Shown here: positions 14,955 through 64,000 of the stretch, piece by piece
Layout: each line of letters starts with the position of its first letter
Position numbering within the stretch: position 1 is the stretch's first letter
From: Mytilus edulis
Lineage: Eukaryota
Length of the DNA: 64,000 nucleotides
Assembly (NCBI RefSeq): GCF_963676685.1
Contig: NC_092344.1
Location: 83,328,001-83,392,000, forward strand
Direction of reading: 5' to 3'
Program-made: the position numbers and the translations under genes
Notes under the pieces: model-generated
Database searches by the model: none
What the model was told of the DNA's origin: nothing
The model's input: only the letters and a program-made list of their open reading frames with translations

Positions 14955-15833
14955 TTATAAGATAGAACACCATCCATCCGATTGTTGGCGCTTCATATCA
15001 TTACGAATGTTTTCTATTTCATTCATAATTTTATTCTCTCTTTGTTGATATTCCTTCCGCAACTCTGCATCTGTTTCGTTTCGTATTCTTTGTTGCAATG
15101 CAAGCCTTTCTCGCTCTTTTTTTGCCTTCTCTTCTGCAATTTTATCCTGGAGAATTTTCTCTGCCTTCCTGTAATCATCATTGGTATAATGAGATCCTCC
15201 ATTATCCTTGACCATTCTCTCAATAAGATTTAGTAACCTTTTGACTTGTTCATCCGCTTCATTGCCTTTTAGTGTATTATCAAATGCAATGTATCGATTG
15301 TTACATTTTTTAAGAAAATTCCTTGGACATTCTGTCAGATCGTTTATAAATTCGTCAATATTTTCGACATCGTGATCTATATCTTCCCTGTCACGTTTCC
15401 AGTCATCGAGCCTAGTAAACAGGACTATAACATACCGCACCAATGTTTCACCGAAATGTTCTACAAAGTGATTGACAGTAGCAACATCTTCTTTAGTAAA
15501 CCGCCCAATTGGCACACATAAGATGAAGGCATGGGGACCCGGCGTTGTTAGAGAAATAAAACCTTCTATTGCACGTTGAGTGTCATCATTTTCTTTCCCT
15601 GTATCAAATACTCCTGGCGTATCCACAATGTTTAAAGTTCTTCCAAATCTCTTCGCCTCCCCTAAATCGCATATTTTTGTCAATGACTGACTACTGCATG
15701 CGAATTTAAATTCTTTCTTTCCTAAAATTGTGTTTCCTGTTTTGCTTTTTCCATTACCTGTCTTTCCAAGTAAAACTATACGCATTTCATCTTTTGGTGA
15801 TAAGTGCACGTTTTCAAAAGGTAGATGTGCCAT
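14955..15833 (-). CDS. GIMAP/AIG1-family GTPase (GTPase IMAP family member-like), 292 aa, C-terminal CaaX CSIL
   Basis: G1 GKTGNGKS, G2 SLT, G3 DTPG, PGPHA box, G4 TRLD and FDN, followed by a coiled-coil tail. A splice acceptor (tttcag at 15851) lies just upstream of the ATG at 15833, so the 68-aa N-terminal extension of the called ORF is mostly intronic. Confidence 0.93.
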   Translation of the reverse strand: MAHLPFENVHLSPKDEMRIVLLGKTGNGKSKTGNTILGKKEFKFACSSQSLTKICDLGEAKRFGRTLNIVDTPGVFDTGKENDDTQRAIEGFISLTTPGPHAFILCVPIGRFTKEDVATVNHFVEHFGETLVRYVIVLFTRLDDWKRDREDIDHDVENIDEFINDLTECPRNFLKKCNNRYIAFDNTLKGNEADEQVKRLLNLIERMVKDNGGSHYTNDDYRKAEKILQDKIAEEKAKKERERLALQQRIRNETDAELRKEYQQRENKIMNEIENIRNDMKRQQSDGWCSIL

Positions 15834-16072
15834 TTTAAATATCTCTATATCTGAAATGGAATATAAAGAAATAAGAAATAATGTAACAACTAGATAATTT
15901 GCAGAAATGGTACCATAGATATAAACATAAGGAGCTGTGGCATGACTTCCAATTAAACAACTGTCCACAATAGGATGTAGACAACTATATAACACCATAC
16001 GATCAGTCTTCAACAATAAGTAAAACCCATACCTCATATTAACCTTTAAAAGAACCCGTTGTGATAAATGTG

Positions 16073-22129: not shown

Positions 22130-22993
22130 ATGACAAATTTCAGTAAATTCAGATTGGTTCTGATAGGCAAAACAGGAAATGGAAAAAGCAAAACTGGAAA
22201 TACTGTAATAGGTCAACAATTGTTCAACTCAAAATGTCAAAGCGGTTCTGTCACAATAAAATGTCAGAAAGAAAACACTTATAGATTTGGAAAAGAAATC
22301 AGCATAGTTGACACACCAGGACTATTCGATACCAGAACAGATAATGCGAATGTACTTTCCGAAATTAAAAATTGCATATCTCTTACTCTACCAGGGCCGC
22401 ATGCGATTATATTATGTGTTCCTATAACTCGGTTTACACAAGAAGACATACAAACTGTTGACTTTTTCATCAAACATTTTGGAAAGCAGTTGATGAAATA
22501 TGTCATCGTACTATTTACGCATTTTGATGACTGGAAACGCGACAACGAAGATGATCCACAAGCATGTCAAAGTATAAATGGATTTATCAGCTCGTTGTCA
22601 ACTGAACTGAAGTCATTCCTTGTACAATGTAATAACCGATACATCGCCTTTGACAATACTCTCAAAGGGCCCTCTGCAGATCAACAAGTAAAGGATCTGA
22701 TTGCTTTAGTCGAACGCACTGTAAGGGAAAACGGAGGAACTCAATATACTAACTCCGATTATGAAAAGGCAGAAAAGAAATTGAAAGAAGAGGAAGAAAA
22801 CAGACGAAAACAAGAAGAAAGAGACAGACAAATGAGGGAAGAAAATATAAGAAGGAAAAGGGAAGAAGAATTGAAGCCTGAACTCGAAGTAACAATTCAA
22901 AATTTACAAGCTCAGAAACTTCAAGCTCAAGCACAAGCAGCTGATATGGCTTCCCCAGGATGTCGTCGCAGAAACGATTGTTCAATTCAATAG
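22130..22993 (+). CDS. GIMAP/AIG1-family GTPase, 287 aa, C-terminal CaaX CSIQ
   Basis: GKTGNGKS, SVT, DTPG, PGPHA, THFD and FDN motifs with an E/R/K-rich coiled coil. Acceptor aacag ends at 22125, just before the ATG. Confidence 0.93.
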   Translation: MTNFSKFRLVLIGKTGNGKSKTGNTVIGQQLFNSKCQSGSVTIKCQKENTYRFGKEISIVDTPGLFDTRTDNANVLSEIKNCISLTLPGPHAIILCVPITRFTQEDIQTVDFFIKHFGKQLMKYVIVLFTHFDDWKRDNEDDPQACQSINGFISSLSTELKSFLVQCNNRYIAFDNTLKGPSADQQVKDLIALVERTVRENGGTQYTNSDYEKAEKKLKEEEENRRKQEERDRQMREENIRRKREEELKPELEVTIQNLQAQKLQAQAQAADMASPGCRRRNDCSIQ

Positions 22994-31032: not shown

Positions 31033-32778
31033 ATGTCTTACGAGAGAAATAAATTATTACTCTTCCATAACTTCCTTCGACTTCTTCTTCCACTGGCACA
31101 GAGGGCAGAGGAAGAAAATCAACAACTGTTTCCTCTTTGTTTTAGGAGGAGGAGGAGGCGGACTCAACGTAGATTTTGGTGCAGGCCATGGCTCATCAGA
31201 AGAACTTTGTTTGGACAATATGACCAACTCCTGCATGAGCTTAACCGGGAAGATGCGTCTGGTTACAGAAACTTTTTAAGAGTTGATGCCGACTTGTTTG
31301 GGGAGATACTTGACAGAATTACCCCTGCAATCAGAAAAAGCTCTACCTCTTTCAGGTAAGTACTTCAATTTTCAAGCAAAATAAAACAGAAATGTACATT
31401 AAGAATAATAGTTAGTTTTATTTTGTATGCTGACTATATCATATGAATATCCGACGGTGCCGAAGGACGAGGCTTGGATTTTCCGCATGATATAGTCAGT
31501 TTAGAAAACCATACTAACTGTTTTTTCAGAAATTCATATCTAAGTAAAAAGGTCAGCAAAACAATCTTTTAAAAAATTTTCCTTAAGCACTTTGCTTCTA
31601 AATAATTCAATTTAATACAAAGTGAACAAAGTACGTGTTAGTAACGCCCCAAATAACGTTCGTATTCATATGGAAGTGGGTATATTAAACTGTCTTGTCT
31701 TTTGTTATTCTAATGTATGACACATTTCCAGTTTACCTTTTATGCGACAAAAAATATTCTTTTAATTGCATTGTAAGTTTAGATAAATATTTCTCGTTAC
31801 AGGGAACCACTTGAACCAGGACTGAAGTTAGCCGTTACACTCAGACATTTGGCTACCGGTTCCACGTATGCTGATCTTATGTATGCCTTTCGTGTTGCCC
31901 GGAACTCCATATCACTCTTTGTGCCTAAAGTCTGCGAAGCAATTTACTTAGCATACAAAGATGAAGTCATGCCGGATGAGATTACGACGGAAGATTGGAT
32001 GCGTATAGCATCTGACTTTGAAAGAATATGGAACCTCCCACACGCTTGTGGTGCTTTGGATGGGAAGCACATTAGAATAAGAAAACCGCCTAACTCGGGG
32101 TCGTTATTTTTTAACTACAAACATTTCTTCTCTACAGTGATGATGGCTCTAGTTGATGCAGATTATAAGTTTATTTGGCTGAGTGTGGGCTCATACGGAA
32201 GTGCATCTGATAGCCAGATATTTAGGGACTCGGAACTACGACCAATGTTAGAAGATGGAACTTTGGATCTTCCGCCTCCCTCCCCTCTTCCAAATGGTGA
32301 AACAGATATTCCTTATTTTCTTATTGGCGATGACGCATTTCCTCTCCGATCATGGATGATGAAACCCTATTCAAGAAAACGTTTAGACCACGATGAGCGC
32401 ATCTTTAACTATAGGTTGTCCCGTGCACGTAGAATTGTGGAGAATGCTTTTGGCATTCTTGCCATGAGATTTCAGATTTTGATTGGAACTATGCAACAAC
32501 TGCCAGAAACAGTAGATTTAATCGTACTGTCTTGTACTACTCGTCATAACTTACTTCGGATAAGGAAACGTGCTGATCTACAACTGTTTGCTGACGAAGA
32601 AGACAACAATCATAATTTAATAGAGGGACAATGGCGACAAGGTGCGCAACTTACCGACGGAGACCCAGGGTATCAGAGAAATTTTGGTAACGCTGCTGGA
32701 ATTGATCAAAGGAACTATCTTAAAAATTACTTCAACTCGGAAGCAGGCGCCGTAGATTGGCAAGAGAACATGATTTGA
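31033..32778 (+). CDS. Harbinger DDE transposase (HARBI1-like), two exons 31033-31355 and 31803-32778, 432 aa
   Basis: The GT-AG intron joins in frame to give SFREPLEPGLKLAVTLRHLATG. Catalytic-type motifs GALDGKH, IGDDAF and RRIVENAFG are present, with no stops in the spliced frame. Confidence 0.92.
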
Positions 32779-36677: not shown

Positions 36678-37562
36678 ATGGCAGAAGCTCCAGAAAACGA
36701 ATTACGAATGGTCCTGATTGGGAAAACTGGAAATGGTAAAAGTAAGACTGGTAACACAATTTTAGGGCAAAAGATATTTCCTTTTGGAAGCGGTGCGATG
36801 TCCCTGACAACTACTTGTCAACTGAGAAATGCACATAGATTTGGCAAAAAGATTAGCTTGGTAGATACCCCAGGAGTGTTTGACAACAGAAATGAAAACG
36901 AAAATGTTCAACAGGAAATAAAGAAGTGCATCTGGCTTACATGTGAAGGCCCGCATGCAATAATTCTATGCGTTCCCATTGGCCGTTTTACAAATGAAGA
37001 TGTGGAGACTGTAAATCATTTCTGTTCCCATTTTGGTGAAAACTTAACAAAGTATGTTATTGTTTTATTCACGCGATTCGACGATTGGAAACGTGATAGG
37101 ACAGAGAACTCTCTTGATCCAGGTATGGAAGGATTCATTGACTCTCTTACGCCCCCCTTGAGAGAATTTTTAAGTAAATGCGGGAATCGTTTCATTGAGT
37201 TTGACAATACCTTGAAGGAAACCAGCGCCGACAGCCAAGTGCAAAGACTCCTAGGGATGGTTGAAAAAATGGTGAGAGAAAATGGAGGTTCACATTACAC
37301 AAATGAAGATTATCAAAAGGCAGAACTAGAACTGCAAAAACAGATACAGGAGAACAAAAAGGAAAAAGAAAAAGAAATACTGAGAATGCAACAGGAAATG
37401 AGAAAAGAAATAGATGATGACCTAAGAAAACAATATAAAGAAAGAGAACAAAAATTAATGCAAGAAATTCAAAATATCCGAGATGAGACAAAAAAGCAAA
37501 ACTGGTTACAAGGCGTGTTAAATGCAGGGATAAGTTTTGTTAGGTCAATTTTCAGATTTTAA
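36678..37562 (+). CDS. GIMAP/AIG1-family GTPase, 294 aa, amphipathic C-terminus, no CaaX
   Basis: GKTGNGKS, SLT, DTPG, EGPHA, TRFD and FDN motifs. Coiled coil alignable with the 14955-15833 paralogue. Ends NWLQGVLNAGISFVRSIFRF. Confidence 0.93.
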   Translation: MAEAPENELRMVLIGKTGNGKSKTGNTILGQKIFPFGSGAMSLTTTCQLRNAHRFGKKISLVDTPGVFDNRNENENVQQEIKKCIWLTCEGPHAIILCVPIGRFTNEDVETVNHFCSHFGENLTKYVIVLFTRFDDWKRDRTENSLDPGMEGFIDSLTPPLREFLSKCGNRFIEFDNTLKETSADSQVQRLLGMVEKMVRENGGSHYTNEDYQKAELELQKQIQENKKEKEKEILRMQQEMRKEIDDDLRKQYKEREQKLMQEIQNIRDETKKQNWLQGVLNAGISFVRSIFRF

Positions 37563-44000: not shown

Positions 44001-44855
44001 GGTATGAAAATATGCCAAATTATTTTTATTTTGTTGCATTTTTTACTTTATTATTATATGAAATCGAGATATATATTTGAACATATATTTACTACATGCA
44101 TATGTTTATGTGAGCATCTTTTTGAGTGCATGCTGTTCAACTCATGGTATAATTTTTTTCTTTAACATTATTTATTTCCAGAAAATATCTAGCTCTAAAC
44201 AGCGGCGAATTCCAGAATTTGAAAATGGGACGTAATTTCCAGGTTTTTGTTAATTTTCACTAAACAATTTGATCAATTTTATGCTACATTTTTCTATATA
44301 AATCGTGAAATCACCTCCTCCCCGTTTTTGAAAATTCAAAGTGAACATAAACCGCTTAATTGTCCACGTTTCACCTACAATCTTTGATATCGCTAGAAAA
44401 CGACGACTCAGCGATAAAAATATTTATAAACCGTACCTTTTATTGATTTGATTATCCTGATTATTAAATGCGGAAATATTTGTGCTTTTTATTTTCCAAT
44501 TGTTTGTCATTTTGCCATTTATGTTTGACACATAAATTAATGGAAAGGAATACACTTTTGTTCAATTTATAGAGTTGTCTGTAAATAAATATGATGAGTT
44601 GTAATATATATATTTTTTCCAGATTCTTTATGGTGTCCTATATAAAACTTTAAAACTTTAAAATTCAAATTTCCAATTTTATGGGCTTATGAACGGTTGA
44701 TTTAGAATTTATGAAAAGAAAATATGGTTTTAAATGCTCCGTTAATCGTACACGTAATATTTAAAGCACAACAACAAAGTTCGACGTTTATAGGTCACTC
44801 CGTATAAAACAAACAAATTTACAGGCTATTTTGTTATTTGGTTTTGATAAAGTGA

Positions 44856-47630
44856 ATGACCAACATGATAAAACAAGTGGATGCGTCCTATCATTGTGGA
44901 ATTGTTTTGATATTTTGTGTGTTTATTGCACAATCCACTTCAAAAACATTGAAACAAAATACAACAATAGATTTGTATGATGATTATTCATTTACAGGTT
45001 TACCGGGAAGCTGTCTGCTTACACCTGTTGATCAAAACATTGCTTACAAAGTGGATAAAATGGCAGAGGACGGTGCAAAAGTTATATACATCTACTTCAA
45101 ATTTCAGAACTTCACCGGAACTTTACACGAAGAGAAGCAAAGCTCTATTTACAGACCATTATCCTGGGTTTGGACCGTAGGCAGGCATGGAAGAAGTCTT
45201 CTTTTACTTCGCCCACAATACGAGGTATTTTCATTGACATCCCTTAGTCTTGGAAGGGAAAGAATTGAAGTTTCTGTGAAACAAATACCGTTGAACTGTC
45301 TGACGCAGTATAATGCAACAGTTGTATCTGATGCTCTAGGAGAATTCTTATTGCACAAATTTAAGACGCCGAGTTCTAACACGTCAGCAACAATGGAGAC
45401 TTTAAAGGAAACGGAACATGTTTGTAATCTTAATATAGCACCACGTAATGGTAAGGCGATATTTTATTATGTCTGCTGCCATAAAACCTTAAGTGGCCAA
45501 ACTGAATGTCAAGAATTAAAATCAGACAGATATCTTACTATTTTATTTATCTGTATATTTCTGATGAACTTTTTTGCCGTCATGTTCAGTCCATTGGTAA
45601 TACCTTCTAAATTCTACAAAAAGAAATTTGAAACAACGTCATATGAACACGAACTTAATGAGCCAGTAACATTGACAGTGAGAAAATCGTCTACAAAGTC
45701 GGAAGAACAGCATAATTTTCCTATTTCTTATTTTGATAAAATGACCGAGTTCAAGAAGACTATTGAAAGTCTATGTACTGATGTAACATACACGGTATCT
45801 GTACGAAAAATCGACATCGTCACTGAAATGGCCCGACTTCTGCCATCAAATCGTGTACCCGTAGGTTTATTCGAATCTTTACATTCAGCTTTAGTTAATT
45901 GTGAAATCCGAAAGAAACCTTCGATGAAGGATTGTTGTGAAAGTAATGTTTTTGGACCTTGTAAACCTTGCAATCGTGTTTTTCCTTGGTATAAAATGCT
46001 GAGAACACTGATGCAGCTTCTTATGTACATACTAATTGGAAAAGTTTGGATTGTTCGTTTACATTTCTTTTTTGAATACGAAGAATCCGAACGAAAGCAG
46101 AGACAAGATGCAGCATCTCAACGGAATTTAGGTCTGACTTATACTGGCAATCTTACGTGGTACCTCACTCCAATTCACACGACTTTCATTGTCTGCTACT
46201 GTATTTTTGTTGTGGATGTACTTCTATTCGGAATAATTAGTGGACAAGTCAAACAGACCCTTCAGAGAGTCATGCGAAAATGTCTACGAGACATGCGTGA
46301 AATATCTAAAAGAAGTGCTATTGGATGGTCTGTACAAATTTTACTTCAACCATTTAAGCATTGTGGTATATTTGGAATCTTCTTTGCCTGGATTTACTAT
46401 ATTCCCGCTATTCCGATAGTCATTTTAACAGTTGCATTTTATTGTTTTCCAACAATAAACGTCCTTGTGAGACTTGTCATTTACTTCGTGGCATATTTTC
46501 TACCTTATGGACGTAATGGTCTTACAGAAAGATGTTGTCTTAAATCGATACAACTTTGGCGCTATATACACAAAGTTTTCCGAATGGATATTTTAACTAG
46601 TCAGGAATCAATCGAACGTCCCGAAAAACTATCCGTTAAAAACAAAATTTTACAGCTGATTGTAATTTTTGCATGTTTGTTGACAATTTCATCTTTTGTA
46701 CTTCTGGCTATGGAATGCATCGTGTTCTTAGTTGAAATTGTAATGTACACACTTATCGGAGTAATAATAAACTCTGCGTATACACTGAAGTATCTATCTT
46801 TAGTATTTCTTCTTGGATTTTATGCGCGTGACTGTTTTACTACCGTCACAGTAGAGTATTTAGCCTTTAACAAATTCTTAAATGGCTATCTAGTGGATAA
46901 AATGAGAGAAAAGGTAGAAAATATCAGCATGCGAGGTGACGTAGATCAAAAAAATACAGCCTTCCAAGCCAGTCTGAATGATACAAAGGGTAGTGATGAC
47001 CAGCCAGTACATCTGACAGTCACAAATGACAAGCTTAAATGGAAAATTAATCGGTTGGTTTTATTTCTGGATAAAAATGACACACCATACATAACATCTA
47101 AGTTTTTCTTTGATACATGCTATTTGGATCAAGCAGGAGTTCCGGGACCTTTGGTAGCTAGCCTTCTTCGTGCAATGCAACGCTTTATTATCATCTGTGT
47201 TTTCCTGTTCTTCGTTGTCATTGTTATTTTAGCATTTGGAGATGAATATGGAATATCAGCAACCAATCAAATGTTTGCTACCCTAGCCGGTGGATTCTTA
47301 CCTTATATCCTAAGGTGGGTTTTGTTCAAGCAACCAGAACCTGTCACTGTTGACCCTAATAATCTGAGTTTCAAAAGTAAATTTCAACGAAAAATTGAAG
47401 AATATCAACAGAACTGGGAAGTTTCTGATATTAGAATTGACAGTTATCCAAAGAAGTTGATTCCGACAAAAGTTGTGGATGACAATGGTATTAAAACTAT
47501 TGAAGATGCAACTGATGATGAAATTAAATCAAAAGACAATGATATCATGCTGGAAGAAATTAAGCCAATCATAAAGAAGGAATTTACTGACAAAGTAGAT
47601 ATTCTGATTTATGATGAATTTGTAGTATAA
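44856..47630 (+). CDS. Uncharacterised multi-pass membrane protein, 924 aa (paralogue A)
   Basis: 2.8-kb uninterrupted ORF in AT-rich DNA. Signal-peptide-like N-terminus, Cys-containing ectodomain of about 200 aa, and about 9-10 hydrophobic segments. Colinear with paralogue B, with many synonymous differences. Confidence 0.9.
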   Translation: MTNMIKQVDASYHCGIVLIFCVFIAQSTSKTLKQNTTIDLYDDYSFTGLPGSCLLTPVDQNIAYKVDKMAEDGAKVIYIYFKFQNFTGTLHEEKQSSIYRPLSWVWTVGRHGRSLLLLRPQYEVFSLTSLSLGRERIEVSVKQIPLNCLTQYNATVVSDALGEFLLHKFKTPSSNTSATMETLKETEHVCNLNIAPRNGKAIFYYVCCHKTLSGQTECQELKSDRYLTILFICIFLMNFFAVMFSPLVIPSKFYKKKFETTSYEHELNEPVTLTVRKSSTKSEEQHNFPISYFDKMTEFKKTIESLCTDVTYTVSVRKIDIVTEMARLLPSNRVPVGLFESLHSALVNCEIRKKPSMKDCCESNVFGPCKPCNRVFPWYKMLRTLMQLLMYILIGKVWIVRLHFFFEYEESERKQRQDAASQRNLGLTYTGNLTWYLTPIHTTFIVCYCIFVVDVLLFGIISGQVKQTLQRVMRKCLRDMREISKRSAIGWSVQILLQPFKHCGIFGIFFAWIYYIPAIPIVILTVAFYCFPTINVLVRLVIYFVAYFLPYGRNGLTERCCLKSIQLWRYIHKVFRMDILTSQESIERPEKLSVKNKILQLIVIFACLLTISSFVLLAMECIVFLVEIVMYTLIGVIINSAYTLKYLSLVFLLGFYARDCFTTVTVEYLAFNKFLNGYLVDKMREKVENISMRGDVDQKNTAFQASLNDTKGSDDQPVHLTVTNDKLKWKINRLVLFLDKNDTPYITSKFFFDTCYLDQAGVPGPLVASLLRAMQRFIIICVFLFFVVIVILAFGDEYGISATNQMFATLAGGFLPYILRWVLFKQPEPVTVDPNNLSFKSKFQRKIEEYQQNWEVSDIRIDSYPKKLIPTKVVDDNGIKTIEDATDDEIKSKDNDIMLEEIKPIIKKEFTDKVDILIYDEFVV

Positions 47631-48439
47631 CCATAATAGATATAATTAATTTGCATAAATGTAGCATGTTACGTGTTGCATACCAAGAAATGATATTGTT
47701 TTTTTTTTATTGTACTGTGAACTGTCTAACATAAATTTCTCATATGAAGCACAATAGTTGTTTTTAAATCTATCATCCTTTGAAATATAGGACAAATGAA
47801 TATACTTAATCACAAAGTAATTCAAAGAATGAAAAAAGAAATCGATGAAAAGTCATATGAATTTAATTTGCCGAATCAGTATTTCAGTTCTGAGAAACAA
47901 GCCCCTGACCATCCACCCACATATGTGATAGTCAACTTTAGGATCCCCTTTTTTGTGTGTATAAAGTTTGAGGCTAAATTTACAACAATAAAAAACAACT
48001 TTAAATTACTAGAAGAATCATCTTCAAACCTGTAACCCAAAACCAACAAGAGGTCGACATACCATCTTCAACAATAGCCAGAAACATCTAAACATTTTAC
48101 CTGAAAATAGACAACAAAGATTTAAGCGTTGCAGATGAAGGAAAATAGCAAAAAGACCAAACCAAGAAAAAAGGTGGGATGTTCAAACAACCGATGATAA
48201 GAGGACGTGATCGTAGACATAGTCATGGTCATAAGTGAAACAAATATTCCGTAACGGTCACAAAATGTAAAGTTTACAATAGGAAAGCTGATATAATCTA
48301 TTTTGTCGCGATGGTTGTTCTCAATCAACCCTCATTGTCAATTTCTTGAAGTAAGTTAAGATAGGAGGACTGTATTTGTGAAGTCCTTTATTTGAGGTTT
48401 GATGGGATAGCTGCATAGTAGCCAGCTTGAGTGTGAAAA

Positions 48440-48990
48440 CAATTCATCTATTTCCCTCCGTCAACAATTATCTTCTGTAGATTTCTTGATTCATATGAGG
48501 CTGAGAGTCCTTGGAAGAATGAAAAAGAGGCTGGCGTTATCCCTTAACTTCACTTTCCGCAATATCAAAGTTATGTTCTCTAGCTAAATAATTCAAAGTT
48601 TGGTGACGATGTTGAACACATTTACCACATCAATCTATTCAAAATATAGACCTCGGATTTCGTTATCTTACTAGAGAATTAACACCGATGTATAAAAGTT
48701 TTCTTATGGAGATAACGAAATAGGGTCTATATCTATATAAGAAATGTGTTACCAAATCGAACTTGAAAAAAAAGATCAAACAAATAGTCTGCCTCACATC
48801 TTGATTTACATCTAAATCTTGACAATAAGAACAAAACTTTACGACAAAAGAGATTATTTCTGATTCCCAATTGTTAACATGCCAACAGCGCCTGCATATC
48901 ATGGAGTATATATCTCCAACTTGATACGATATTAAATGGCCTGTCTTTCCAATCATGATTTCCTTAACAGAGGATCGCTGCTCATAGGGA
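48440..48990 (+). mobile_element. Degenerate Penelope-like RT remnant (plus a small inverted piece at about 48250-48320)
   Basis: Recognisable decayed peptides KNEKRLAL..NFTFR....VL.LNNSKFGD.VEHIY, ASHLDLHL, YDKRD and GVYISNLIRY. Confidence 0.6.
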
Positions 48991-49795
48991 ATTCAGATAT
49001 ACAACCAAGAGTTCTAAATGGCGGATATACCTTCTATTATAATTTTAGTTCCCCTTAAACATAGATGTTTAATTTTAAACAAATAAAAGTTTTGCTCTAG
49101 TAGAAAACAAAACTACTATACTTAAATAATATACATGTATGTTTATGAAATCATAAACTGGAGATTTCAGAAAATAAAATCCTTTTCAAATTTAAGAAAA
49201 ATCAATGTTTAAATCTATTATCACTTATCGTTTATGATAGCTATACCAACATTTTTCTTCAAATGGTATCGGTGATTTCAACGACCTTGGAACATTGAAA
49301 CCTTTCTTCCGCGTCCCGTCTAGATCGACGGATAAAATTACTGGAGTGTCAAAAGGAAGATATCAATGACAACTGATGCCTCTGATATCGAATAGACCTT
49401 TATACAAAAATGTTTACACACTTTTATATGCGTGCTGTAATTGAGATACAAATTCGTAAAGGAAGGTTTCTGTATTCTTTTTTTTTATTCTGATAAAGAA
49501 GTCAGTGTAATCGCATGGAAATGAGATATCGTGTTCATGCATTACTTCCTTGTGCAATTATTTTGGCGTTTTTAACATGTATACTTGTTAGCGCACAAAC
49601 AACCTATAAGGTTTATGTCCTCTTATAGTTTTATAGTTATGTTATCATAAACTAACATTAGAAAGTATTCACCAATACATGAGTGCAAACGGAAATTTAA
49701 AACTTTATGATATCCGTTATAAAGTATAACAACTACATTTTTAAAAAATCTTATTACGTAGAATTTGAAAATACTACAAAAGTTGTGTGTTCAAA

Positions 49796-52579
49796 ATGAG
49801 ACAACAAGCGGCTTCTGTGTATTTCTATGGAATCTTATTAATATTTTGTATTCTGATTGTACAGTCCATTTCACAAACTATCAGTCCAGGCAGAACAGAG
49901 AAGTGGGAAAATCTTATGAATGGTGTGTTACAAAATTGTGTTCTGGAAACAGTTGATACAAATATAGCGACAAAAGTAGACAAAATGGCCGTAGATGGTG
50001 CTAAAGTAATTTACATTGATTTTAACTTGTATAATTTCAACGAAAGTTTAATTATACAGGACCAAGGCTCTGTTTACAATCCTGTATCCTGGGTAATGAC
50101 CACGGGAAGACATGGTCAAAGTCTTCTTCTTCTTCGTCCACAGTATGAGGTATTCTCATTGCGTTCTTTAAGCCTTGGCACAGAGCGGATCGAGGTTTCT
50201 GTGAAACAAACGCCAATGAACTGTCTGGCAGACTATAATGCTACCGTCGTTTCTGATGCACTTGGAGAGTTCTTACTACATAAATTTAAGACACCAAGTC
50301 GCAATACTTCAGTGTCTGTGGAGACTTTGAAAGAAACGGATCACATTTGTAACTTACATATAGTCCCCAAAAATGGTAAGGCGATATTCCATTACATGTG
50401 TTGTCATAAAACCTTAAGTGGCCATACTGAATGTCAACAATTGAAATCAGATAAATATCTAGCTGTTTTATTTGTCTGTATATTCATAGTTAACTTCTTT
50501 GCCGTTATGTTCAGTCCACTTCTAGTTCCATCAAAATGTTACCAAAAGAAATTTGAGACAACATCATATGAACACAAGCTAAGAAAACCAGTGATTTTAA
50601 CAGTTAGGAAAACGTCTGCAAAATCGAAAGAACAGTATTCATTTCCAGTCTCATATTTTGAAGAAATGACCGAGTTTAAGAAAACCGTTGAAAGTATGGG
50701 AACAGATATTACATATATAGTAACTGTCAGTAAAATCAACATAGTAACTGAAATGGCTCGACTTATGCCTTCAAACCGAGTACCCGTTGGATTGTTCGAA
50801 TCTTTATATAAAGCTTTAATTGATTGTGAAGTACGGAAGAAGCGTTCTATGGAGGGCTGTTGTGAAAGTAACATATTTGGATCGTGTAAACCGTTTAATC
50901 GGGAGTATCCCTGGTACAAAATTCTAAAATTAATCATGCACTTTTTACTGTATGTACTGGTAGTGATGATTTGGTTTGTTCGTCTATATGTCTATTTCAA
51001 ATTTGAACAGTCAGAACGTTTGGATAGACAAAATGCTGCATCGCAACGTAATTTAAAGCTTGGTTATACCGGGAATCTCACGTGGTATCTCACTCCAGTT
51101 CATATACTTTTCGTCACTTGTTACTGTATTTTTGTTGTGGATGTAATTCTTTTCGGAATAATTAGCAAGCAAGTCAAACGGACGCTTAAAAAAGTCCTGC
51201 GCAAATGTTTCCGTGATATGCGAGAAATTTCAAAAACGAGTGCGTTCGGATGGTCGATACAGATTTTACTTCATCCATTCAAACATTGTGGCGTATTTGG
51301 ATTTTTGTTTGCCTGGTTGTTTTATATCCCGGCTATCCCGGTATTCATAGTAACGCTTTCGTTTTATTGTTTCCCCACAATAAACGTGTTAGTGAGGTTA
51401 GTTATCTACTTCGTAGCATATCTTTTGCCATATGGACGCAACTGCCTCACGGAAAGGATTGCGGAAAGATTAAAACAACTATGGCGTTATATTCATAGAG
51501 TTTTCCAAATAGATATCTTAACCAGTCAGGAATCAATTGAACGACCGGAAAAATTGTCAGTGAAAAATAAAATATTGCAGGTAATAGTTATTTTTTCATG
51601 TTTGTTGACTATTTTATCGGCTGTTCTATTAGCTATGGAATGTATTGTGTTCTTAGCCGAAATTTTCATGTACACGCTTATCGGAATAGTAATAAATTCG
51701 TCTTTCACCTTGAAATATCTATCGTTGGCGTTCCTTCTTGGATTTTATGCGCGTGACTGTTTTAATACTGTTACAGTAGAATATTTAACCTTTAACAAAT
51801 TCTTGAATGGATACTTAGTAGACAAAATGAGAGATGAAGTCGAGAAAATAAGTATGCAAAGTCACGAAGATCAAAGAAATACGGCCTTCCAAGTCAGTCT
51901 GGATGGTATGGAAGGTCAAGACGATAAACCGGTATCTTTGACGAATGAACATGACAAACTGAAATGGATAATAAATAGCTTGATATTATTTTTAGATAAA
52001 AATGACACACCATACATAACATCAAAGTTTTTCTTTGATACATGTTACATGGAACAAGCAGGAGTTCCAGGACCACTAGTTTCTAGCCTACTTCGCGCAA
52101 CACAGCGATTTATGGTTATCTGCATTTTCTTATTCTTCGTTGTCATCGTTATTTTAGCATTTGGAGATGAATATGGAATATCAGCCACCAATCAAATGTT
52201 TGCTACCTTAGCCGGTGGATTTTTACCTTATATCCTGAGGTGGGTTTTGTTCAAGGATCCAGAACCCGTCACTGTAGACCCTAATAATCTTAGTTTCAAA
52301 AGTAAATTCCGACGAAAGATTAAGGAATACAAACAACTTTGGGAAGTTTCCGATATAATAGTTGATAGATTTAAAACAAAAGAGACAGAAGATGAGAATG
52401 AAGTCAAAATCACTGCAGCTGCGACAGACGACGAAAACATGTCACAGGACGAAGTGATCGTTCTCGAGGAAAACAATTCAAAAGACGACACAATCATGCT
52501 AGAGGAAATTAATGCTACTGTGAAAGACAATACAGTTCGGACAGTAGATCTTCTTATTTATGACAATTTTACTGTCTGA
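49796..52579 (+). CDS. Uncharacterised multi-pass membrane protein, 927 aa (paralogue B)
   Basis: First ATG at 49796 (the ORF track starts at a GTG), with a candidate acceptor ending at 49761. Same architecture as paralogue A, with long identical blocks. Confidence 0.9.
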   Translation: MRQQAASVYFYGILLIFCILIVQSISQTISPGRTEKWENLMNGVLQNCVLETVDTNIATKVDKMAVDGAKVIYIDFNLYNFNESLIIQDQGSVYNPVSWVMTTGRHGQSLLLLRPQYEVFSLRSLSLGTERIEVSVKQTPMNCLADYNATVVSDALGEFLLHKFKTPSRNTSVSVETLKETDHICNLHIVPKNGKAIFHYMCCHKTLSGHTECQQLKSDKYLAVLFVCIFIVNFFAVMFSPLLVPSKCYQKKFETTSYEHKLRKPVILTVRKTSAKSKEQYSFPVSYFEEMTEFKKTVESMGTDITYIVTVSKINIVTEMARLMPSNRVPVGLFESLYKALIDCEVRKKRSMEGCCESNIFGSCKPFNREYPWYKILKLIMHFLLYVLVVMIWFVRLYVYFKFEQSERLDRQNAASQRNLKLGYTGNLTWYLTPVHILFVTCYCIFVVDVILFGIISKQVKRTLKKVLRKCFRDMREISKTSAFGWSIQILLHPFKHCGVFGFLFAWLFYIPAIPVFIVTLSFYCFPTINVLVRLVIYFVAYLLPYGRNCLTERIAERLKQLWRYIHRVFQIDILTSQESIERPEKLSVKNKILQVIVIFSCLLTILSAVLLAMECIVFLAEIFMYTLIGIVINSSFTLKYLSLAFLLGFYARDCFNTVTVEYLTFNKFLNGYLVDKMRDEVEKISMQSHEDQRNTAFQVSLDGMEGQDDKPVSLTNEHDKLKWIINSLILFLDKNDTPYITSKFFFDTCYMEQAGVPGPLVSSLLRATQRFMVICIFLFFVVIVILAFGDEYGISATNQMFATLAGGFLPYILRWVLFKDPEPVTVDPNNLSFKSKFRRKIKEYKQLWEVSDIIVDRFKTKETEDENEVKITAAATDDENMSQDEVIVLEENNSKDDTIMLEEINATVKDNTVRTVDLLIYDNFTV

Positions 52580-52658: not shown

Positions 52659-53961
52659 ATTATATGTTATTCAGGTCTCAGACAGGGTATATACTGTGAC
52701 ATTCCCGGCTTAGAGTTTATATCCCCTGAGCCGAAGGCGAAGGGGATATAAGCCCTAAGCCGGGAATGTCACAGTATATACCCTTTCTGAGACCTGAATT
52801 ACACATATATTACGGATTACCCCTTACTTAATGTTATTTTCCAGTGCAGGTATTTGTTCACAACACATATGAAAAACCCCAACCTGATATGTTCGGCATA
52901 CGTGAAGGATTTTCTAATTTGCTGTGAACAGAATTTGATCATGTATGTAATAATTTATAATAACACTTTTAACATCAAATTTAAGTATTAAAAGTGTAAA
53001 TTGCGTGATTTTGTATCACAAATGTATTATTGACTGAAGCACGTCATTATTTTCCCTCTGTGAGCCTCTGACAGTCTGATAGCTTTTGACTACGTCACAT
53101 AGAAACCGGTGTTATGATGACGTTTTTGAGGTTCCAATTGGGGATAAAAACGTCGTATATACCCCGGCAGTTTCCTGAATATATACTGACATCTCTGTGT
53201 TGTTATCCAATCACAAACCTCGACACATTTGTAATCCGTAATATAAGATCTTCTACATCTAATATTTTCAAAGGATATCAAAAGATCCACTCAAATATAA
53301 ACAGTCGGTATTTAGTTTGTCGATGTCCCGTTTATTATTAGAGGAATGTTTATATTCTTATAACGATATAAACATATATTACGGATTACAAATGTGTCGA
53401 GGTTTGTGATTGGATAACAACACAGAGATGTCAGTATATATTCAGGAAACTGCCGGGGTATATACGACGTTTTTATCCCCAATTGGAACCTCAAAAACGT
53501 CATCCTAACATCGGTTTCTATGTGACGTAGTCAAAAGCTATCAGACTGTCAGAGGCTCACAGAGGGAAAATAATGACGTGCTTCAGTCAATAATACATTT
53601 GTGATACAAAATCACGCAATTTACACTTTTAATACTTAAATTTGATGTTAAAAGTGTTATTATAAATTATTACATACATGATCAAATTCTGTTCACAGCA
53701 AATTAGAAAATCCTTCACGTATGCCGAACATATCAGGTTGGGGTTTTTCATATGTGTTGTGAACAAATACCTGCACTGGAAAATAACATTAAGTAAGGGG
53801 TAATCCGTAATATATGTGTAATTCAGGTCTCAGAAAGGGTATATACTGTGACATTCCCGGCTTAGGGCTTATATCCCCTTCGCCTTCGGCTCAGGGGATA
53901 TAAACTCTAAGCCGGGAATGTCACAGTATATACCCTGTCTGAGACCTGAATAACATATAAT
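52659..53961. repeat. 1303-bp palindrome: two inverted 587-bp copies of a long-hairpin element (52659-53245 and 53375-53961) around a 129-bp spacer
   Basis: Arms are reverse complements of equal length, with only about 2 mismatches noticed. Each arm has its own hairpin of about 145 bp and a tatattacggattac / gtaatccgtaatata pair. Confidence 0.95.
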
Positions 53962-61061: not shown

Positions 61062-64000
61062 ATTGAAGAACAGGGAAGCTCAAGAAAGAATGGGTCTCCA
61101 GGATTTTATGACAGTATTCAGTAATTTAGATCCTTCATGTAAAGGATTTGTCACCTCTCATCAAGTGTTAGAATTTTGTCAATCAATTTACCACAGCAGT
61201 ATATCAGTTGAGCAAATTGAACATGCAATAACACAGATATGTGGTTCTACATCATCTGGACGAGTCAGTAGACAACAGTTTATAGCTGTTCTTGAAGAAA
61301 TCGAACGCAGGCGTTCAGTAGAAGAACAAGCTTATTGGGACTTCCAAGCTTTAGACTATAAAGGAACAAACAGAATTTCATTAAAAGATGCCTTGATGAT
61401 GTTTAGAGAGTTTCATGGAGACAGATTCTCATTGTATACATGGAAAGAGTTTTTGAAATCCCGAGATGATCCTGGTGAACAAGTTTATTTTGATGAGATA
61501 AGACTGTGGTTGTGTAATTACCCTTCAGGTGAACCAGCTTCCAAAGATCAGATAACACAAGAAGAAGAGCAACTAATCAAAATACAATCTAACCATCAGA
61601 GTGATACAATCAATAAATTAAAGCAGATTCAGGTAAATGTTTTAAAAGATAAGTGTGTCGTATTTACATTTGTAAGTGCATGTGTAAAGCTTCCAAGGAA
61701 CTATAATTTTTATACTATGACTTATCATTATGCCTTTAACTGCTAAATTGTGAAATACACTCATAACACATTTAAATATCTTATCAGTAACAGTATCTTC
61801 AATTTCTTTTACAGCCAATTTCATTGAGTTTGTAGCTAACGGTAATCTTTGGTTAGCTTGCTTGTTAGCTGAACCATGAAGTCATTAGGTCAGGTATTCT
61901 ACCCTCCTTTTGAAGTAGCCTAATCTAACAGGCAGACAGATTGATTATCTGCTTGAGTAGTCTACTCTTAAAGGAGGGTAGTTTACCTGAACTAACAAAA
62001 ACTTCACGGTTCAGTTAACAAGCAAGCTAACCAAAGATATTACATTTGGCTTCACGCTCAATGAAATTGGCTGTAAAACACATAGTTCTTCAGATGTTGA
62101 TATTTTAATAAAATCATCAAACATTTGATTATTTCTGCCACCAAAAACATTTTTGTAAATTCTGATTATTTGATTTCTTAGAAACAAAACCTCAAATTGA
62201 TTCATGCTAATGATAAATCAGTTTATGAAAATACCACTATAATGGTATAACAGTACTGAGTTGTCAAGTGTTTCAATACAGGAATAAATTACATGTGTAT
62301 GACACATTTTAAGGATACTACTAGTACTCTAACAACATGAAAACAGAAACTTTTATTGTTTTAAGAGATTAACCCTTTTTTATCAAATGTATAGAACATG
62401 TAAATGTATTTAACTGCTCCAGTTTTGGGTACATAATAATGATTGTATGTTTGAAGGATGACAAAGAAGAAATACATGAGTACTTGGATAATGCTCAGTA
62501 CAATGCACAGAGAAGAAGAAATAAGTAAGTATAACTGCAATTTATAGAAAATCATTCATCATTGTTGCTGAATTGTAGATTAGAATTGTCTGTTATTAGT
62601 AAAAAATGTCACAGTAAAACTGAGTTTTCTCCCCTTGATTTTTGAATAGCACCAGGCCTAGGGTTAGCAAGCCTCTTTAGCGGTTGAATTTGAAGCAGTT
62701 TATTTTGATGATTTAATTACTTGTATATGATAAAGCTTGACAGTAGATTTTAATTTTGTAGATGGGACAAACAAGGACTTGAAGCAATGTTATTTGATGA
62801 TGGTTTGGAAGCAGACGATGACACAACATCTACTAAGTCGAAAGATACAATTACCATGAGTGATGTAAATGATGCAATGACGCAGAAATATGATAAACTC
62901 AAGTCTAAACTGCTGTGGGAAATGGCTAAAATGTCTGCAGGTATAATAGTATTGTCTGTAGAATAATGTGAGAAAAAACATGATTAGTGTTAGATATGAC
63001 AAATAGAATTTTGTGAAAAAAATTATGTAAGTCTGCAAATTTTCCATATGTATATGAACAAGCTTTACTTTGTCTTAAACTAATTTTTTGATTAGACATC
63101 AATAGTCAGAAGAATATTTTATGCATCTAATTTCGATCTTACAAAATTTTCAGACTTTTTTGCTTTAAGACCAGACTTTTATATATAATTTTAGCAATGG
63201 AAAGTGACAGACATGAGATTTTCCAGCAGCTATGTCGTGAAGAGAAGCAGTACAGTAGAGAAGGTAGTTTACAGGATAGAATAGGTGGATTATCTGGTTC
63301 TCGTCTGGACCTTATAGCCACATTGACAGGTTTGATGGGTGAAGTCAGGTCTCATGACTTAAAGAGAAAAGAGCAGACAGAGAAAAAACGTGAAACACTC
63401 CGACAAGAAGGCATGAAAGAACAGGACATTGATAAAGCCATACAGACAGAATACCAGGGAGTTATAAGTGGTAAGATTAAAAAAAAGGCTCTTCAAATAT
63501 TATCATTAGTTTTGGTGGATTGTTGGCATTTTTACCGCATCTCCTTAATAAATCTTAAGATGGAAATAAATAATATTATAAAGCTATGATTAATGAAATG
63601 TAAAAAAAGTCATGGGAACAGAACACCAGAGAGTCATGACCAGTATTTTAAAAGATGTAAATATAGATATGTCAAGAAGGTTAGGGTTAGGGTTATTTTT
63701 GTCTCAAATTCATAACATTTAAGGAGTTGATTATTTTAGTTTTATAAAACAACAATTACTACATTCATGTCTTATGGTCAGTGCAAGAAAAATGTTTCTT
63801 TTAATTGTCAGGAGATACAACATGTGGAGCTAGCTTAATTAACTTGATAGAAAGATTTAAGCTTGAGAAGGAAGAAACAATGATGGCAGTTAAATCTAGA
63901 GCCAGTATGTCTTCTGTTGCTTTAGAGAATGAATATTATAGGTTACTACGGCAACACTTGTTACTGACAGATGAATGGGGTTTCCCAGCCTTGGCCATGG
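61062..64000 (+). CDS. EF-hand and coiled-coil protein, 5' part; exons 61062-61632, 62457-62524, 62762-62940, 63195-63470 and 63812->64000
   Basis: EF-hand-like loops DPSCKGFVTSHQV and DYKGTNRISLKDA. Five exons join in frame through GT-AG introns (phases 0, 2, 1, 1). Probable ATG at 61090; the gene continues past the window. Confidence 0.85.
61842..62043. mobile_element. Intronic MITE-like inverted repeat (about 200 bp)
   Basis: ctttggttagcttgcttgttagctgaacc..gaagt is inverted at 62001-62037, and ctaccctccttt pairs with aaaggagggtag. Confidence 0.6.

Follow-up and report, generated by a model that had tools for sequence, protein, structure and literature searches.

The stretch of DNA analysed here, 64,000 nucleotides (nt) of Mytilus edulis (contig NC_092344.1, positions 83,328,001 to 83,392,000; called the window below, with all positions counted from its first letter), contains two long, related open reading frames (ORFs) for multi-pass membrane proteins. 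Gene A (44856..47630, plus strand) is a single-exon coding sequence (CDS) that starts with ATG and encodes 924 amino acids (aa) followed by a stop codon; its predicted product is a nine-pass membrane glycoprotein of the Pfam family PF28478. Its paralogue, gene B (49796..52579, plus strand), is likewise a single-exon CDS, encoding 927 aa from its ATG and ending with a stop. In the mechanically generated ORF list gene B appears as 49787..52579 with 930 aa, beginning at a GTG located 9 nt before the ATG at 49796. Reading of the DNA assigns the true start to this ATG (MRQQAAS...), and the same start is found in the Mytilus galloprovincialis protein P0002. The two genes are arranged head-to-tail, both frames are uninterrupted, and no other ORF of at least 150 aa in the window list overlaps the region. 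Over their full length the two proteins share 70% identity and 83% similarity. Nucleotide homology is confined to 45027-47443 in gene A versus 49952-52368 in gene B (77.5%); the flanks of the two genes share no homology, and terminal repeats bounding either gene were not found.

Comparison of gene A with gene B by the Nei-Gojobori method gave 0.177 nonsynonymous substitutions per nonsynonymous site (dN), 1.18 synonymous substitutions per synonymous site (dS) and a dN/dS ratio of 0.15. Given these values, the pair is an old duplicate in which both copies are under purifying selection. The product of gene A is 100% identical over 924 aa to the ENA protein P0001, and that of gene B is about 99% identical to P0002 of M. 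galloprovincialis.

Transcription was detected for both genes. In RNA-seq run X24, 18% of which was read, 82 reads were assigned to A and B, 63 of them at least 99% alike; they cover 45100-47500 of gene A and solely the start of gene B (49700-50099). The first mates of these reads lie mostly on the minus strand, and in most stranded libraries a first mate on the minus strand reports RNA of the plus strand. In addition, gene A is spanned by contigs from two transcriptome-sized contig sets whose RNA status is a guess, X1 (44426-47708) and X2 (44769-47726). The contigs of both sets are colinear with the genome without joints, and coverage of the flanks and of the 2-kb intergenic region was nil, except for a repeated 31-nt word and, in X2, short low-depth patches. 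Such coverage is in keeping with an unspliced mRNA but not with a DNA library. The apparent unspliced transcript of gene A accordingly runs over 44426..47726 (plus strand), these being the contig limits of X1 and X2 and not mapped RNA ends. The tandem pair of intronless genes for proteins of about 925 aa, which a first-pass annotation had proposed from the letters alone, is thus borne out by intact ORFs and by colinear, jointless contigs over gene A. A lack of expression, which that annotation had named as grounds for refutation, was not observed.

As a point of annotation, the public M. edulis models are shorter than the genes: P0005, with 535 aa, is 100% identical to gene A but corresponds to 58% of it, and P0006 comprises 600 aa. 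At both shortened-model loci the genomic ORFs of 924 and 927 aa are uninterrupted, and the transcript contigs span all of gene A.

The architecture of the proteins was derived from the secondary structure of an AlphaFold model, from a hydropathy scan and from statistics over a 75-sequence alignment, to which the conservation values given below refer. The model of gene A that was computed with this alignment reached a mean predicted local distance difference test (pLDDT) of 86.4 and a predicted template modelling score of 0.80, with 588 residues at a pLDDT of at least 90; a run with a 6-sequence alignment gave a pLDDT of 37 and was unusable. Positions of all parts are given for gene A, on the plus strand. 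The putative signal peptide (44856..44939, aa 1-28), recognised by hydropathy, is the most variable part of the protein (dN/dS 0.57) and is followed by a linker, up to about aa 52, that is modelled at low confidence. The ectodomain (44940..45524, aa 29-223, about 195 aa) adopts a predicted alpha/beta fold from aa 53 onwards, with a pLDDT of about 85-97 at aa 50-220 and a dip to 72 at aa 171-180. It carries six near-invariant cysteines (C53, C148, C190, C207, C208 and C218, each 91-100% conserved), which are enough for three disulfides, and the approximately 170 folded residues probably hold these three bonds. N-glycosylation sequons are located at positions 35, 85, 153 and 175 in A and at 85, 151 and 173 in B. 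Across the alignment there are 3.0 sequons per ectodomain (about 1.6 per 100 aa), compared with 0.45-0.65 per 100 aa in loops A and E.

The first transmembrane segment (TM1, 45525..45605, about aa 224-250) was located by hydropathy and is represented in the model by helices 225-243 and 245-248. It leads into loop A (45606..45986, aa 251-377), a predicted cytoplasmic region of long beta hairpins and helices with strands at 260-278 and 310-324. Near its end loop A contains a cysteine cluster, C349-x10-C360C361-x7-C369, of which the trio C349/C360/C361 is 93-95% conserved and lies about 17 residues before TM2. The trio is predicted to be cytoplasmic and may be a metal site or a site of S-acylation, which are the ordinary readings of such a sequence pattern.

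The membrane core, TM2-TM7 (45987..46841, aa 378-662), contains the conserved residues R401, E409, H441, R539, E620, N639 and Y656 within or beside its helices. TM2 is a helix of 45 residues (aa 378-422) and is followed by a short outer loop, TM3 and a helical inner loop C. Next come a TM4-TM5 hairpin, a variable inner loop D and then TM6 and TM7, helices of 45 and 43 residues that are joined at N639. Loop E (46842..47180, aa 663-775, 113 aa) is again predicted to be cytoplasmic; it forms a small beta domain (strands between 701 and 747) and bears a GxPGP motif in which P763 and G764 are 95-99% conserved. The most conserved part of the family is the TM8-TM9 hairpin (47181..47333, aa 776-826) with the motif FLxFV..AFG..S.TNQ.LATLAGGFLP. 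In A and B a stretch of 42 aa (FLFF...WVLF) is identical here, the outer turn comprises three residues, and G813 and P816 are 99-100% conserved; S801 and Q805 are further conserved polar residues in or at the ends of helices. The C-terminal region (47334..47627, aa 827-924) consists of a conserved helix and strand (aa 837-861, with W854 and D858), a disordered acidic tail (pLDDT below 50 at aa 872-910, net charge -9) and a terminal D-L-x-I strand (aa 916-919).

Mean net charges per sequence were +8.7, +4.3, +2.5 and +1.1 for loops A, C, D and E, respectively, -4.0 for the ectodomain and -0.9 for loop B, and the inner ends of each hairpin are flanked by basic residues. On account of these loop charges, the enrichment of sequons, the ectodomain cysteines and the basic inner hairpin ends, the model fits a nine-pass glycoprotein with a cleavable signal peptide, its N-terminus outside and its C-terminus inside. 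Judged by the topology, loop A, loop E and the C-terminal strands may pack into one composite, beta-rich cytoplasmic domain. Most of the layout that had been read from the letters was confirmed: a signal peptide (about aa 1-28), a cysteine-bearing ectodomain of about 200 aa with sequons and one TM segment after it, then six to seven further TM segments (six were found), a loop of about 115 aa (here 113) and a nearly invariant terminal hairpin, which corresponds to the identical 42-aa stretch. The cysteine cluster described as C-x9-CC-x7-C does lie in a loop of about 130 aa, but its first spacing is x10.

P0001 and P0002 carry the precomputed Pfam accession PF28478.1, which the searched copy of Pfam-A lacks. 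A six-sequence profile, made of the pair and four relatives, served as the query against 1.84 billion cluster representatives and matched 665 clusters at E<=1e-3, 452 at E<=1e-10 and 293 at E<=1e-30, with E-values down to 1e-240. Among the best 150 of the 665, most are 850-1250 aa long and match from end to end, and the shorter entries look like fragments. A word-indexed protein search, also with a deep alignment, returned Mytilus proteins only, eight in number. Named members among the matches listed are all 'hypothetical' or 'uncharacterized'. They come from the bivalves M. galloprovincialis, M. edulis, Mytilus coruscus, Crassostrea gigas (XP_034306724), Mizuhopecten yessoensis (OWF48738), Mya arenaria, Sinanodonta woodiana and Mactra antiquata, from the gastropods Patella caerulea (KAK6177353/4, adjacent locus tags) and Haliotis asinina (two on one 66-Mb contig), from the chiton Liolophura sinensis and from the leech Helobdella robusta (HELRODRAFT_180676, HELRODRAFT_188453). 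Members share their length, the cysteine pattern, nine hydrophobic helices and the TNQ.LATLAGGFLP hairpin.

In a FastTree phylogeny of 146 rows the family splits into two deep halves, and the pair falls into a small Mytilus-like clade. A clade of 63 rows is without any paralogue from the M. edulis genome and holds the Helobdella protein P0132 together with many proteins from metagenomes and unannotated assemblies. Compared with the members of PF28478 the two proteins differ in nothing essential; they are two members of a Mytilus-specific subclade. Many full-length relatives stem from short metagenome contigs, on which genes were presumably predicted without an intron model; if so, the single-exon state is probably family-wide.

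Within the same genome of 1.37 Gb, translation in all six frames revealed 30 matches, distributed over 7 contigs and 12 or more loci, so that at least ten loci exist besides the pair. Some of these genomic copies are open over 867-1038 aa and others contain in-frame stops. Since clusters mix open frames with stopped copies, tandem duplication adds members to the family, and decay removes copies from it. Further clusters of long frames and stopped copies were seen at 49.36-49.41 Mb (C9), 40.56-40.76 Mb (C10) and 73.65-73.76 Mb (C11).

We are highly confident that A and B are intact and transcribed single-exon paralogues in tandem and that they belong to a large mollusc and annelid family which is on record solely as hypothetical proteins and as the recent entry PF28478. 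The pair had been described as undescribed and of no recognisable family. This holds in so far as a characterised relative was not found, but PF28478.1 and hundreds of hypothetical relatives were already on record. The family as such is catalogued, but no function, literature or structural relative was found for it. The literature searched contained no mention of PF28478 or of six member accessions, and transmembrane proteins are absent from a paper on motifs specific to spiralians (PMC7441323).

The distribution of changes was then considered along the protein. Between A and B, dN peaks at aa 1-60 (0.52) and in the acidic tail (0.40). Identity amounts to 75% in the folded ectodomain, 71% in TM2-5 and 82% in TM6-7, with 71-82% for the core overall. 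Family-wide, the mean pairwise identity is 25% in the ectodomain, 26% in TM2-5, 44% in TM8-9 and 25-31% in the other folded parts. The dN/dS of the ectodomain is 0.15, equal to that of the whole gene. Variation is located at aa 1-52, in loop D and in the acidic tail, and all of these except the signal peptide are modelled at low confidence. The proposal of a variable sensing domain on a conserved membrane core therefore fails, since the folded ectodomain is as conserved as TM2-5 (25% versus 26%). Its premise, that differences concentrate in the N-terminal ectodomain and in the acidic tail, is right for aa 1-60 and for the tail but not for the folded ectodomain. Likewise, the statement that the core differs mostly at synonymous sites agrees with purifying selection on the core (dN/dS 0.11-0.13), but about one quarter of the core residues differ.

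One segment, aa 770-840 (47163-47375 in A and 52088-52300 in B), stands apart in that synonymous change is depressed as well as amino-acid change. Here dS is 0.37 compared with about 1.2 elsewhere, and codons at identical residues are themselves identical in 78% of cases compared with about 58% elsewhere (Fisher p=0.0017, post hoc). A short gene-conversion tract or a constraint at the nucleotide level could account for the low dS.

Searches against characterised families and structures gave no convincing relative. For A and B, Pfam-A returned noise only (COX8 at E=0.04, TRPM_tetra at E=0.92), and for 46 diverse members at E<=0.1 eleven families were hit by one member each, which is noise as well. 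The PDB sequences gave no match to the single protein; searched with a 108-sequence profile, they gave phospholamban (E 0.09) and MsbA (0.4) at best, which represents noise from transmembrane helices. In the ESM Atlas no usable match was found for gene A or for a scallop member. With Foldseek the best E-value of the model against the PDB was 0.21, at a template modelling score below 0.1. VIA-align was run against 48,161 representative chains, and for helical proteins its Z scores below about 13 are uninformative; the best score was Z 7.5, for designed helical bundles, and none reached Z 8. A second look with VIA-align at Foldseek's own list gave Z 5.4 at best.

The absence of a G-protein-coupled receptor (GPCR), Cys-loop, TRP or transporter signature, noted at first reading, was upheld by Pfam for the two proteins and the 46 members. 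No 7tm family of the GPCR classes A, B, C or F was found at E<=0.1 in these members, and no GPCR was found by Foldseek at E<=0.001. Of the Cys-loop channels, Neur_chan_memb was hit in one of the 46 members at E=0.088, which is noise, and the proteins have nine helices and a different ectodomain. For TRP, voltage-gated and polycystin channels there was no match to Ion_trans, PKD_channel or PLAT, and a lone TRPM5 structure row scored Z 2.3.

In layout the proteins recall the PKD1-like proteins, in which a signal peptide and an ectodomain are followed by a TM segment, a beta-rich cytoplasmic domain of about 130 aa and more TM segments, and of which some members, such as mammalian PKDREJ, are intronless. 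The likeness is one of layout and not of homology. No PLAT, REJ, GPS or PKD_channel match to the polycystin-1, PKD1-like and REJ proteins was obtained in the 46 members, and polycystin structures were not among the fold-search rows listed. Moreover, the proteins of the window have nine helices as opposed to eleven in polycystin-1 and PKD1-like proteins, and loop A with its long hairpins and helices is unlike the PLAT sandwich.

As the best explanation of the data as a whole we propose, with a probability of roughly 0.6, that A and B belong to the family described above, with a role as cell-surface sensors as the favoured mechanism. Taken by itself, this function as a sensor of the receptor or channel type is tentative and less likely than not, as it is suggested by architecture and genomic behaviour. 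In such a protein an extracellular ligand or partner would be bound by the conserved ectodomain, and ions, or a signal in the form of a conformational change, would be passed on by the membrane core. This core contains conserved charged residues within or at the ends of its helices (R401, R539 and E620) and a conserved polar belt at the outer ends of TM2, TM3, TM6-7 and TM8-9 (E409, H441, N639, S801 and Q805). Coupling to partners inside the cell would fall to the cytoplasmic domain and to the membrane-proximal cysteine trio, the latter as a metal site or by S-acylation. Expansion within one lineage, including tandem copies, is typical of families of surface receptors and chemosensory proteins, and the reading as a receptor or sensor is supported by the tandem, lineage-specific expansion of this family, which is also visible in the adjacent locus tags of Patella. 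The expanded nicotinic receptors (PMC6896357) and subsets of class A GPCRs (PMC11886862) of lophotrochozoans are reported to be likewise lineage-expanded, duplicating and often single-exon. To these the present family has no relation in sequence or fold, its ectodomain is not fast-evolving, and with about ten copies per genome its copy number is modest compared with the expanded lophotrochozoan receptors.

Several observations weigh against this proposal. Pore, selectivity or ligand-binding motifs of known types were not found, and the ectodomain is no more variable than the core, unlike in many expanded families of chemoreceptors and immune receptors. The location at the surface is assumed from the signal peptide and the sequons, and the sequence would be equally compatible with the membrane of an organelle of the secretory pathway. 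The hydrophobic helix TM6 is, at 43 residues, unusually long, which places the exact membrane boundaries and the topology in some doubt. In the second RNA run, X21 (6% read), not a single read fell on A or B, and expression of the pair is therefore low or restricted. The restriction to molluscs and annelids may be incomplete, as distant relatives outside these groups may be present among the weak profile matches. Finally, the structure searches mostly weighed residues 450-830 of the 924-residue model, and the ectodomain or the cytoplasmic domain may have a known fold.

Lineage-specific biology of molluscs and annelids, both major animal groups, is mostly unassigned to genes. The present family is well defined and 'dark': it is large, old, under selection, expressed and confidently modelled, and has no characterised match in sequence or structure. 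Its single-exon genes of about 2.8 kb can be amplified from genomic DNA and expressed directly. Two tempting ideas, a diversifying sensing domain and an immune module linked to GIMAP genes (see below), are removed. That the family is a spiralian-restricted class of surface receptors or ion channels, built on a membrane fold without a solved relative, is unlikely. If true, a new class of signalling proteins in Metazoa would have its first members in the mussel pair and some 650 relatives in the databases.

The alternative that survives best would place the proteins in the secretory pathway as membrane enzymes or transporters, for example as a glycosyl- or acyltransferase or a lipid or solute carrier, with a luminal ectodomain and with E409, H441, N639, S801 and Q805 as the active or binding site. 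The cluster of conserved Glu, His, Asn, Ser and Gln residues at one membrane face and the charged residues in or beside the helices would suit such a protein. An ectodomain as conserved as the core is also what would be expected of a catalytic or substrate-binding domain and not of a diversifying sensor. VIA-align also gave a weak match with ALG6, an enzyme of the GT-C type (Z 5.9, 75 residues), which points in the same direction, but this score lies within the noise for helical proteins, and no Pfam transporter or transferase family was found in the 46 members. Nor was an internal repeat of the membrane core detected by sequence: comparison of TM2-5 with TM6-9 and of all helix pairs by hhalign gave probabilities of at most 5%, bearing in mind that structural repeats are often invisible in sequence. 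Furthermore, housekeeping proteins of these types are usually low-copy and widespread and rarely lineage-restricted with at least ten loci plus pseudogenes per genome. On balance we regard an enzyme or transporter as unlikely.

Considerably less credible is a divergent seven-helix receptor in which TM3-TM9 form the GPCR bundle, TM1-TM2 and loop A are additions, and the ectodomain binds the ligand as in class C or adhesion receptors. TM3-TM9, with the N-terminus outside and the C-terminus inside, would have the appropriate topology, and weak VIA-align rows were obtained to a designed GPCR-like fold (Z 7.1, 95 residues), and to the membrane domains of mGlu2/3 (Z 5.4) and mGlu5 (Z 3.9). All of these scores, however, lie below the noise threshold for helical bundles, no alignment exceeds 98 residues, and the Pfam and Foldseek searches for GPCRs were negative as described above. 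The loops are also un-GPCR-like, as intracellular loop 3 would comprise 113 aa with a beta domain and extracellular loop 3 just three residues.

A selfish or virus-derived multicopy ORF, such as an envelope-like or transposon-borne membrane protein that spreads in intronless form, is extremely unlikely. The intronless CDS, the many dispersed copies of which several contain stops, the full-length relatives on short metagenome contigs and the transposon ORFs nearby would be in keeping with this idea. However, homology between A and B ends inside the CDS without bounding terminal repeats, and selection has been strong since the old duplication (dN/dS 0.15 at dS 1.18). In addition, a gene B protein of about 99% identity is present in M. 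galloprovincialis. No relative was found in viral contigs by a search with a shallow alignment or in a viral structure library, where the best E-value for the model was 0.42. ORFs common to the flanks of the paralogues have the appearance of unrelated retroelement pieces, and no constant partner gene was seen in these flanks. An origin from a transposon or virus was rejected on the grounds of the missing bounding repeats, the strong selection and the lack of viral relatives.

Upstream of the pair, at a distance of 7-30 kb, the window contains three ORFs for GTPases of the AIG1 family, at 14955-16037 (minus strand), 22130-22993 (plus strand) and 36678-37562 (plus strand). Between the second and the third of these GIMAP genes lies an ORF for a Harbinger-type transposase (DDE_Tnp_4, 31849-32778, E=9e-33), and a small basic ORF (31033-31359) is located just upstream of the transposase. 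The first-pass annotation had raised, as a speculation, a functional link between the pair and these membrane-targeted immune GTPases. In 240 kb flanking nine to ten other family loci of the same genome no AIG1 match was found at E<=1e-5, although the same queries recovered all three genes of the window and their mutual similarities. Adjacency to GIMAP genes is thus clearly not characteristic of the family. Bivalves possess very many GIMAP genes, which makes a chance adjacency likely, and the transposase ORF also separates the GIMAP cluster from the pair. In spite of the three ORFs upstream, a functional module of the pair and the GIMAP/AIG1 immune GTPases deserves next to no credence.

Downstream of the pair, an ORF with a pair of EF-hands (61063-61746; EF-hand_7, E=2e-9) is probably an exon of a gene for a calcium-binding protein. 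A perfect inverted repeat of 587 nt begins 80 nt after the stop codon of gene B, with arms at 52659-53245 and 53375-53961, a spacer of 129 nt and a nested 72-nt hairpin at each end. The 100% identity of the arms points to an artefact of the assembly or to a foldback element of very recent origin. In the intergenic region between A and B, for which Rfam gave no match (47700-49790), the 31-nt word mentioned above is located at 48830-48860. It reaches a depth of 925-2150 in the two transcriptome-sized contig sets, RNA reads share just this word, and it is probably part of a dispersed repeat.

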